Assembly (NCBI RefSeq): GCF_006345805.1
Contig: NC_043019.1
Location: 17,607,360-17,671,359 of the forward strand
Origin: Octopus sinensis
Taxonomy: Eukaryota
Direction: 5' to 3'
DNA: 64,000 nt
The notes beneath the pieces are model-generated. The model made no database searches, was not told the origin of the DNA, and worked only from the letters and a program-made list of their open reading frames with translations. Each line of letters starts with the position of its first letter. Within the stretch, counting starts at the first letter, position 1. This document shows positions 60,790 to 64,000 of the stretch, one piece after another. The position numbers and the translations under genes were made by a program.

Positions 60790-61066
60790 CTTCAAATATG
60801 GTTCTGAAGATGATAACTCTAGCATAACATCTGGTTCAGGATTTGGTGCCCAGAGTAGTCCACATTCAGCTTCACAGAACATGGCACAGCAACAACAGAC
60901 CTCTTTGCCATCGGCATCAATGCAGATCCCTACTGTAATCAATCAGCCTTCCCCATTTAACATTGAGACTTACCAACTGTTTGAGCAACATGATGCTAAT
61001 CGCAGAACTATTGAGAAACTCCAAGAGAAAGTACAGCGAATTATAGACGAATTTGACCCTTACAAG
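60790..61066 (+). CDS. TMCC: TMCC-family coding exon (277 nt, phase 2-0): FKYGSEDDNSSITSGS...RRTIEKLQEKVQRIIDEFDPYK
   Basis: TTTCAG acceptor (AG 60788-60789). KYGSEDDNSSITSGS matches the TMCC motif KYGSEEDCSSATSGS and is followed by the start of a coiled-coil-like segment. The first donor is AAG|GTAAGA at 61067. Confidence 0.92.
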
Positions 61067-64000
61067 GTAAGAAGTATTGACGAATTTGACCCTTACAAGG
61101 TAAGAAGTATTGACGAATTTGACCCTTACAAGGTAAGAAGTATAGGCGAATTTGACCCTTACAAGGTAAGAAGTATTGACGAATTTGACCCTTACAAGGT
61201 AAGAAGTATTGACGAATTTGACCCTTACAAGGTAAGAAGTATAGACGAATTTGACCCTTACAAGGTAAGAAGTATAGACGAATTTGACCCTTACAAGGTA
61301 AGAAGTATTGACGAATTTGACCCTTACAAGGTAAGAAGTATTGACGAATTTGACCCTTACAAGGTAAGAAGTATTGACGAATTTGACCCTTACAAGGTAA
61401 GAAGTATAGACGAATTTGACCCTTACAAGGTAAGAAGTATTGACGAATTTGACCCTTACAAGGTAGAAGTATTGACGAATTTGACCCTTACAAGGTAAGA
61501 AGTATAGACGAATTTGACCCTTACAAGGTAAGAAGTATTGACGAATTTGACCCTTACAAGGTAAGAAGTATAGACGAATTTGACCCTTACAAGATAAGAA
61601 GTATAGACGAATTTGACCCTTACAAGGTAAGAAGTATAGACGAATTTGACCCTTACAAGGTAAGAAGTATAGACGAATTTGACCCTTACAAGGTAAGAAG
61701 TATTGACGAATTTGACCCTTACAAGGTAAGAAGTATTGACGAATTTGACCCTTACAAGGTAAGAAGTATTGACGAATTTGACCCTTACAAGGTAAGAAGT
61801 ATTGACGAATTTGACCCTTACAAGGTAAGAAGTATAGACGAATTTGACCCTTACAAGGTAAGAAGTATAGACGAATTTGACCCTTACAAGGTAAGAAGTA
61901 TTGACGAATTTGACCCTTACAAGGTAAGAAGTATTGACGAATTTGACCCTTACAAGGTAAGAAGTATTGACGAATTTGACCCTTACAAGGTAAGAAGTAT
62001 AGACGAATTTGACCCTTACAAGGTAAGAATATAGACGAATTTGACCCTTACAAGGTAAGAAGTATAGAGACGAATTTGACCCTTACAAGGTAAGAAGTAT
62101 TGACGAATTTGACCCTTACAAGGTAAGAAGTATAGACGAATTTGACCCTTACAAGGTAAGAAGTATTGACGAATTTGACCCTTACAGGTAAGAAGTATAG
62201 ACGAATTTGACCCTTACAAGGTAAGAAGTATAGACGAATTTGACCCTTACAAGGTAAGAAGTATAGACGAATTTGACCCTTACAAGGTAAGAAGTATTGA
62301 CGAATTTGACCCTTACAAGGTAAGAAGTATAGACGAATTTGACCCATACAAGGTAAGAAGTATAGACGAATTTGACCCTTACAAGGTAAGAAGTATTGAC
62401 GATTTGACCCTTACAGGTAAGAAGTTTGACGAATTTGGCCCTTACAAGGTAAGAAGTATTGACGAATTTGACCCTTACAAGGTAAGAAGTATAAACGAAT
62501 TTGACCCTTACAAGGTAAGAAGTATAGACGATTTGACCCTTACAACGTAAGAAGTATTGATGAATTTGACCCTTACAAGGTAAGAAGTATAGACGAATTT
62601 GACCCTTTCAAGGTAAGAAGTATAGACGATTTGACCCTTACAAGGTAAGAAGTATTGACGAATTTGACCCTTACAAGGTAAGAAGTATAGACGAATTTGA
62701 CCCTTACAAGGTAAGAAGTATTGACGAATTTGACCCTTACAGGTAAGAAGTATAGACGAATTTGACCCTTACAAGGTAAGAAGTATAGACGAATTTGACC
62801 CTTACAAGGTAAGAGTATGACGAATTTGACCCTTACAAGGTAAGAAGTATTAGACGAATTTGACCCTTACAAGGTAAGAAGTATAGACGAATATGACCCT
62901 TACAAGGTAAGAAGTATAGACGAATTTGACCCTTACAAGGTAAGAAGTATAGACGAATTTGACCCTTACAAGGTAAGAAGTATAGACGAATTTGACCCTT
63001 ACAAGGTAAGAAGTATTGACGAATTTGACCCTTACAAGGTAAGAAGTATTGACGAATTTGACCCTTACAAGGTAAGAAGTATAGACGAATTTGACCCTTA
63101 CAAGGTAAGAAGTATAGACGAATTTGACCCTTACAAGGTAAGAAGTATAGACGAATTTGACCCTTACAAGGTAAGAAGTATAGACGAATTTGACCCTTAC
63201 AAGGTAAGAAGTATTGACGAATTTGACCCTTACAAGGTAAGAAGTATAGACGAATTTGACCCATACAAGGTAAGAAGTATAGACGAATTTGACCCTTACA
63301 AGGTAAGAAGTATTAACGAATTTGACCCTTACAAGGTAAGAAGTATAGACGAATTTGACCCTTACAAGGTAAGAAGTATTGACGAATTTGACCCTTACAA
63401 GGTAAGAAGTATTGACGAATTTGACCCTTACAAGGTAAGAAGTATTGACGAATTTGACCCTTACAAGGTAAGAAGTATAGACGAATTTGACCCTTACAAG
63501 GTAAGAAGTATAGACGAATTTGACCCTTACAAGGTAAGAAGTATTGACGAATTTGACCCTTACAAGGTAAGAAGTATTGACGAATTTGACCCTTACAAGG
63601 TAAGAAGTATAGACGAATTTGACCCTTACTAGGTAAGAAGTATTGACGAATTTGACCCTTACAAGGTAAGAAGTATAGACGAATTTGACCCTTACAAGGT
63701 AAGAAGTATTGACGATTTGACCCTTACAAGGTAAGAAGTATTGACGAATTTGACCCTTACAAGGTAAGAAGTATTGACGAATTTGACCCTTACAAGGTAA
63801 GATTTATAGACGAATTTGACCCTTACAAGGTAAGAAGTATTGACGAATTTGACCCTTACAAGGTAAGAAGTTAGACGAATTTGACCCTTACAAGGTAAGA
63901 AGTATTGACGATTTGACCCTTACAAGGTAAGAAGTATTGACGAATTTGACCCTTACAAGTAAGAAGTATTGACGAATTTGACCCTTACAAGGTAAGCAGT
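61043..64000 (+). repeat. 33-bp minisatellite built from the exon/intron junction, about 90 units, running off the window end
   Basis: The unit AT(A/T)GACGAATTTGACCCTTACAAG|GTAAGAAGT repeats continuously. 2958 bp / 33 gives about 90 units. Scattered 1-nt indels and substitutions are present. Confidence 0.97.

Follow-up and report, generated by a model that had tools for sequence, protein, structure and literature searches.

We describe here a 33-nt minisatellite of at least 90 units which reiterates an exon-intron junction of a TMCC-family gene in Octopus sinensis. The window that we analysed is a stretch of 64,000 nt (contig NC_043019.1, positions 17,607,360 to 17,671,359 of the forward strand). 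It holds four exons of the gene and, starting within the last of these, an array that runs on to the end of the window. The features on which the argument depends are listed below, with a vertical bar marking each splice site.

11116..11148, + strand: TMCC exon A, a 33-nt micro-exon encoding GVVDNIKGAK(E), located by tblastn with gastropod TMCC proteins; sites tttatag|T and AGA|gtaagt, joining in frame to exon B
30073..30152, + strand: TMCC exon B, 80 nt, tblastn E 8e-11 to P0010; sites tgtacag|G and TTG|gtaagt
50011..50074, + strand: TMCC exon B', 64 nt, encoding DSMEENPTEDNSHHGSGTLPA(S), found through a conserved GTLPA motif; sites attttag|A and CAG|gtaggt
60790..61066, + strand: TMCC exon C, 277 nt, encoding (S)FKYGSEDDNSS...EKVQRIIDEFDPYK; starts at tttcag|C and ends in phase 0
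61042..64000, + strand: 33-nt minisatellite of at least 90 units, each made of 25 nt from the 3' end of the exon and 8 nt from the 5' end of the intron
61067..61072, + strand: the ancestral (authentic) 5' splice site AAG|GTAAGA, at a boundary kept in the orthologous loci L001 and L002
61100..61435, + strand: eleven reiterated in-frame donors (61100 ... 61430), each of which would add one VRSIDEFDPYK module
~61463..61468, + strand: the first frame-breaking 1-nt deletion, in the 13th copy, which turns GTAAGA into GTAGAA (AAGGTAGAAG) and so also removes that unit's donor
63630..63632, + strand: an AAG>TAG substitution that places a stop in the exon frame of its unit

The gene in the window is a member of the TMCC family, as a reading of the DNA made before any database search (the sequence-only reading) had proposed. 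The four exons have AG|...|GT sites throughout and join in an unbroken frame to give a 151-aa conceptual product. This product scores 62.4 bits (E 6e-17) with the Pfam profile PF10267 (Tmemb_cc2), for which the curated cut-off is 32.8, over model positions 112-257 out of 397, and is collinear, at 57% identity (E 3e-45), with residues 353-482 of the Gigantopelta aegis protein XP_041360623.1, which is named "transmembrane and coiled-coil domains protein 1-like". Exon C on its own has no Pfam match. Its homologues were found by an exhaustive HMMER search in which the closest were gastropod proteins and an ENA contig, and the full-length homologues, from Gigantopelta and Batillaria, match Tmemb_cc2 with E 4e-127. 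A gene model that splices exon B straight to exon C was rejected as out of frame, which led to a search for an additional exon and so to exon B'. This exon aligns to Gigantopelta residues 390-408 and is required for frame continuity between exons B and C. The tttcag|C acceptor moves the start of exon C from 60789, as first read, to 60790. The introns separating the TMCC exons within the window are ~10-30 kb long. The exons for the C-terminal coiled coil and the pair of transmembrane helices after it, as expected of the family, would lie downstream of the array and past the window end.

The array proper was delimited with Tandem Repeats Finder, which, applied to the whole window, reports a 33-nt repeat at 61038..64000 with 90.2 copies, 96% matches, 1% indels and a score of 5381. 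The program places the start at 61038 rather than 61042 on account of a GAA micro-homology, and the copy count of 90, which comes from a single haplotype, is a lower bound because the array continues past the window end at 64000. The repeat is confined to this place, since a 32-nt core of the unit has 78 matches at up to three mismatches in the window, every one of them within the array, and no match in 100 shuffled sequences. The roughly 90-fold amplification of an exon-intron junction put forward from the sequence is therefore upheld. When the array is cut at a fixed anchor it yields 89 complete units, 74 of which are exactly 33 nt long and the other 15 of which carry small indels. Of the 89, 63 have one of two perfect forms, AGTATTGAC in 33 units and AGTATAGAC in 30, which are distinguished by one base only. 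An exact scan of JGI metagenome contigs with a 29-nt core of the unit produced no match, and exact protein look-ups retrieved neither the read-through open reading frame (ORF) described below nor an ORF on the minus strand of the array; all of these are weak nulls.

The end of exon C reads CGAATTATAGACGAATTTGACCCTTACAAG|GTAAGAAG and is followed by TATTGACG. One of the two unit forms, the ATA type, is GTAAGAAG followed by TATAGACGAATTTGACCCTTACAAG, and is an exact copy of the last 25 nt of the exon together with the first 8 nt of the intron. The exon-derived part is thus the 25-nt TATAGACGAATTTGACCCTTACAAG and the intron-derived part the 8-nt GTAAGAAG, and GAA lies directly upstream of both borders of the unit. 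The composition of the unit as exon end plus intron start had been recognized correctly in the sequence-only reading, with a division of 24 + 9 that we revise to 25 + 8; the two differ only in the assignment of one shared T.

Comparison of homologous sequences indicates that the unit was copied from the junction, not the junction from the unit, and that the exon part is ancestral. In all homologues the exon terminates in (D/E)(E/D)F(D/E)xYK followed by GT, and the form DEF(D/E)xYK|GT is present in at least seven other mollusc sequences. The orthologous loci L001 and L002 have the boundary TACAAG|GT in their DNA as well. The read-through ORFs of other species all have ...YK and then V, and in full-length TMCC orthologues the same K runs directly into the next exon, ISVHGELSLLRSMLEEEKYK. 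The following exon of the octopus gene is predicted to open with something similar to xxxE(I/L/M)S(L/V)LRS(L/M)LEEE. The array is not present in the orthologous introns of L001 (~6.3 kb, with the next exon at 16616-16753) and L002 (~0.5 kb), nor do the short read-through ORFs of other species contain exon-like intron sequence. We therefore take the amplification to be lineage-specific.

One further sequence crosses the same boundary. EukProt P0012, assigned to Digyalum oweni, a gregarine parasite of periwinkles (transcript GHVL01015528.1), is a clearly mollusc-like TMCC that reads ...DEFDSYK and then continues into intron as VGSVFQS. It is probably an intron-retaining transcript that derives from host contamination.

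Reiteration of the junction gives the array an extraordinary concentration of donor motifs. It contains 87 copies of GTAAGA and 81 of the full AAGGTAAGA, whereas the remaining 61 kb of the window contains 11 and 0, respectively, and 81 units carry AAG|GTAAGA. In the exon frame the unit translates as VRSIDEFDPYK. The first twelve donors (61067, 61100 ... 61430) are all in phase 0 with exon C and the sequence between them is free of stops, so that both phase and translation agree with what had been claimed for a stop-free 33-nt unit. An ORF of 239 aa consequently stays open from 60779 to 61498, running from exon C into the array. If the 12th donor were used, exon C would be 640 nt long as against 277 nt.

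Alignment of each unit to the consensus reveals ~16 one-base deletions, 2 insertion events and ~14 substitutions. Counted as distinct changes in the exon frame, the substitutions comprise ~4 that are synonymous (the common ATA/ATT difference included), 8 missense and 1 nonsense, the last being the AAG>TAG change at 63630. Change per position at the nine donor positions is about equal to that at the other 24 positions of the unit. This pattern looks neutral, being close to neutral expectation, and the copies show no evidence of selection. Along the array, the order of the ATA and ATT variants does not depart from a random one (47 runs among 45 A and 44 T units, where 45.6 +/- 4.7 would be expected), and no higher-order repeat or clustering of the two variants is seen in the 89 units. 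A random-looking order of variants is typical of the variant-repeat maps of hypervariable minisatellites. At the RNA level, a predicted fold of four units has no special structure (z = -1.0), the 5-bp CUUAC/GUAAG stem that can form at each donor is too weak to matter, and a scan of the whole window at Rfam gathering thresholds returns no matches.

The array joins a known class of exon-intron-boundary minisatellites, represented by F7, IFI6, CBS, LMNB2, PDGFA and ABCA7, where splicing relies on the first donor, in some genes joined by one or two of those directly after it. It adjoins a genuine exon with an authentic donor, as seen in the four-exon TMCC product and the conserved TACAAG|GT, its units are arranged head to tail and fall within the ~10-100 bp size range of the class, and the donor is reiterated. 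Intron 7 of human F7 has a 37-bp unit in 5-9 copies, of which the most upstream donor alone is used (Borensztajn et al. 2006, PMC1557585). In 50 minigene constructs the downstream F7 donors were functional but silent and never competed, and a greater distance between donor and exon led to more exon skipping (PMC1557585). In IFI6 (6-16) an authentic donor is followed by 25 pseudo-sites, and the authentic site and the next two are used (PMC1557585), so that the minisatellite in intron 2 gives rise to three mRNAs and different isoforms (PMC1557585, PMC4526556). CBS has 15-20 units and uses its authentic donor and two pseudo-sites (PMC1557585); its 31-bp variable number tandem repeat (VNTR) is written c.1444_1467+7(16_21), that is, 24 nt of exon and 7 nt of intron (PMC2630376). 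LMNB2, with a 100-bp unit, and PDGFA, with an 81-bp unit, use the authentic donor only (PMC1557585). The VNTR in intron 18 of ABCA7 is built from a 25-bp unit in 12 to ~427 copies that starts from the canonical exon 18 donor (De Roeck et al. 2018, PMC5954066). There, one unit is retained at low level through use of the next donor, and skipping of the exon that follows is correlated with the length of the VNTR (PMC5954066). The view that no comparable donor ladder had been described thus does not hold, given the 25 pseudo-sites of IFI6 and the up to ~427 units of ABCA7.

These systems resemble the TMCC array to different degrees. F7 shares with it a first unit lying across the exon-intron boundary and an authentic donor followed by identical pseudo-donors at fixed spacing. 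It differs in that its unit takes 4 nt from the exon and 33 nt from the intron rather than 25 and 8, is present in 5-9 copies rather than at least 90, carries a weak donor (UGG|GUGGGU) rather than the strong AAG|GUAAGA, and at 37 nt is not a multiple of three, unlike the 33-nt TMCC unit. Exclusive use of the first donor was demonstrated experimentally for F7, whereas the TMCC array is known from its sequence alone. CBS is nearly identical in anatomy, with 24 exon and 7 intron nt in place of 25 and 8, but has 16-21 copies of a 31-nt unit that is out of frame, so that extended transcripts frameshift. The CBS VNTR is reportedly also credited to Lievers (2001) and Yang (2000). IFI6, likewise derived from a junction and with many reiterated donors, comes closest to a graded series of protein lengths, although its unit is much shorter, its copies are fewer, only three of its rungs are used and it is a vertebrate interferon-induced gene. 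The IFI6 unit is said, after Turri (1995), to be 12 nt long and in frame. The ABCA7 array likewise starts from the canonical donor of the preceding exon and may be longer than 10 kb. Its C-rich unit, however, consists of intron sequence only, from the GT onwards, and does not preserve the frame, and a disease association is known for ABCA7. LMNB2 and PDGFA reiterate their donors and use the authentic one alone, and differ from the TMCC array in having longer units in 10-18 copies.

Taking these comparisons together with the pattern of variation, we favour, with a probability of roughly 70%, the view that the array is a lineage-specific junction minisatellite, presumably a VNTR, that is neutral or nearly so and in which the upstream donor would dominate a long series of silent pseudo-donors. 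A tandem duplication of a 33-bp segment across the 5' splice site of the TMCC exon would have come first, and slippage during replication or unequal exchange would then have multiplied the copies, so that they came to occupy the 5' end of a long intron; we infer both this mode of expansion and polymorphism in copy number. Since the copied segment includes the last 25 nt of the exon and the first 8 nt of the intron, every unit would acquire the donor AAG|GTAAGA, and the gene would tolerate the array because the first, ancestral copy of the donor is intact at its 5' end. By analogy with the mammalian genes, the donor at 61067 would serve nearly all transcripts and the downstream copies would lie silent in the intron. 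The donors at 61100 and 61133 would be used at low level at most, giving minor isoforms extended by 11 and 22 aa which, being in frame, would not be removed by nonsense-mediated decay. Under exon definition a 640-nt exon is unfavourable beside introns of 10 kb or more. The more distal donors would thus be disfavoured, because their use would enlarge a 277-nt exon to as much as 640 nt between introns of at least 10 kb.

Several considerations weigh against this interpretation. What it says of donor use is drawn wholly from mammalian genes, and splicing in molluscs may differ. The TMCC donor can form seven contiguous base pairs with U1 and is stronger than the UGG|GUGGGU of F7. Nonsense-mediated decay would spare extended isoforms, as it does in IFI6, since the unit preserves the reading frame. 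Over its first 29 units the array is nearly unchanged, with one indel and two substitutions in total, and this near-identity could reflect recent homogenisation or, equally, constraint. The distal end of the array, moreover, lies beyond the window.

If donors beyond the first were in fact used, as they are in IFI6, the gene would produce two or more length variants of a conserved coiled-coil protein of the endoplasmic reticulum membrane, each rung adding 11 aa, and the array length of an individual might, as with ABCA7, change the balance of isoforms or how often adjacent exons are skipped. We regard this as unlikely, though far from negligible. The array would then be a heritable element through which a repeat modulates the structure of a mollusc TMCC protein.

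A role for the array as a regulatory RNA platform is improbable. On this account ~80 sites for the U1 small nuclear ribonucleoprotein, or for other factors bound to the unit, would affect, to a degree set by array length, how efficiently the transcript is spliced, the skipping of exons nearby, premature polyadenylation or retention in the nucleus. The 81 perfect AAGGTAAGA sites within 3 kb, where the other 61 kb has none, are what such a platform would offer, and the correlation between VNTR length and skipping of the next exon in ABCA7 (PMC5954066) provides a precedent. The donor motif is nevertheless conserved no better than the rest of the unit, and the predicted RNA has no special structure. 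None of the related species examined has the array, and a role of this kind would therefore have to be recent and dispensable.

We must also consider the quality of the assembly. One-base deletions make up 16 of the ~18 indels and mostly affect short homopolymers (five cases of GAATT>GATT and about four of CAAGG>CAGG), and the indels rise from one in the first 950 nt of the array to ~17 in its last 2 kb. Consensus error of long reads in tandem repeats, perhaps close to where a contig ends, would account for this pattern, and real decay of older distal units would account for it equally well. Were the deletions errors, the number of in-frame donors would exceed 12. A stronger proposition is that the array, or most of its length, was made or inflated by a long-read assembler, with the indels and the order of variants representing consensus noise. 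The preponderance of homopolymer deletions, their distal increase, the random-like order of ATA and ATT units lacking a higher-order repeat and the fact that the array is still running at the window end are all compatible with this proposition. An assembler would not, however, invent a 33-mer derived from the junction, and the interspersion of two unit types and several rare variants, normal in hypervariable minisatellites, calls for real reads across the array. The four flanking exons are, in addition, intact. We therefore consider an artefact on this scale to be distinctly improbable. The existence of the array is secure, while its exact length, the order of its variants and the positions of its frame breaks are provisional.

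The sequence-only reading had suggested that choice among the donors acts as a dial for protein length, with many in-frame donors used to insert 0 to 11 or more VRSIDEFDPYK modules over a range set by the length of the allele. The attraction of the idea lies in the twelve consecutive, identical, strong phase-0 donors with no intervening stop and in a 33-nt unit that amounts to 11 codons, and IFI6 demonstrates that junction minisatellites can generate extended isoforms (PMC1557585, PMC4526556). As for the parallel being an in-frame one, that rests on the reported IFI6 unit mentioned above. Set against it, the studied cases use at most three donors and mostly one, distal donors would produce an exon of more than 600 nt, and the copies are without coding constraint. 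The repeat protein that the dial envisages in repeat context was not found in the public collections searched: comparison of the repeated module with 5.8 billion protein clusters gave 2720 word candidates and no significant match, which is a weak null, as the word index was incomplete and missed the Gigantopelta protein that the HMMER search recovered. The protein structure is a further difficulty. A single-sequence AlphaFold model of the Gigantopelta orthologue, of low confidence overall (predicted template modelling score 0.24; per-residue pLDDT ~70-86 over residues 450-560), has one long helix at 439-606, and the junction residue 482/483 falls ~44 residues inside it rather than at the start of the coiled coil, where it had been placed. 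Each module contains a proline, and additional modules in the predicted helix would probably disturb it rather than tune it. On balance we judge the dial very improbable, and conceivable at most in a reduced version with one or two additional rungs.

Least credible of all, to the point of near-dismissal, is a translated repeat domain in which the exon continues through the array as hundreds of residues of (VRSIDEFDPYK)n and the frame breaks are sequencing errors, for although the unit is stop-free in the exon frame, the 239-aa ORF is open and many of the breaks resemble homopolymer errors, the strong donor in every unit would be spliced, a TAG stands at 63630, the ratio of synonymous to non-synonymous changes appears neutral, orthologues have no such domain and the repeat is absent from the database proteins searched.

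Read as a largely neutral junction minisatellite, the TMCC array is a non-vertebrate case of a known class and among the larger ones, combining a strong consensus donor and a unit that is a multiple of three with at least 90 copies. It offers a natural test, outside mammals, of the rule that the most upstream of a series of identical donors is used, in a situation where the alternative products are in frame and would escape nonsense-mediated decay. It does not reveal a new mechanism unless several of the donors prove to be used in RNA. A more immediate consequence concerns annotation, in that gene predictors and ORF callers will extend exon C into the array along the 239-aa ORF.

The window contains other repeats and mobile elements. 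A 310-bp element is present at 60291-60600, ~190 bp upstream of exon C, and in inverted orientation at 895-1199, with 91% identity between the copies; the copy near exon C includes a 44-nt near-perfect palindrome at ~60560-60603. A TMCC intron harbours a (TA)n-based microsatellite at 22242-23925 (~860 dinucleotide copies over 1.7 kb, 84% matches, 7% indels), the noise in which may derive from long-read consensus error. Another array, of 0.9 kb at 28563-29491, is made of ATAT/ATGT-type units with periods of 4, 16 and 20. Between these, at 26843-28150, is a G+C-rich element composed of 62/63-nt tandem units (GGTGTTTTTATGTGCCACCGACACAGGTGCCAGAC) arranged in 324-nt higher-order repeats, which has an inverted partial copy 9 kb away at 36335-36514 and fragments at 11292-11467 and 21250-21419; its longest ORF has no Pfam match and the element no Rfam match.

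A dispersed family of ~420-bp elements resembling short interspersed nuclear elements is represented by at least nine copies of 75-92% identity, often beside CA/TA microsatellites (4313-4732, 4925-5331 on the minus strand, 24356-24775, 25194-25388, 33387-33803 on the minus strand, 41814-42242, 45034-45431, 50781-50915 on the minus strand and 52769-53111). On the minus strand at 54073-55155, a 360-aa ORF with a zf-RVT match (E 1.7e-8) is the tail of a retrotransposon of the type without long terminal repeats, and the named sequences nearest to it come from Argonauta hians (63%) and Octopus sinensis (49%). A fragment of a mariner/Mos1-type transposase is found at 14150-14434 on the minus strand (HTH_48, E 3.7e-8), and the corresponding intron of L001 contains Transposase_1 fragments too. 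Finally, an ORF at 3213-3551 on the plus strand, in microsatellite-rich sequence, has a borderline PHD-finger match (22.8 bits, cut-off 24) and is probably the remnant of a transposable element.

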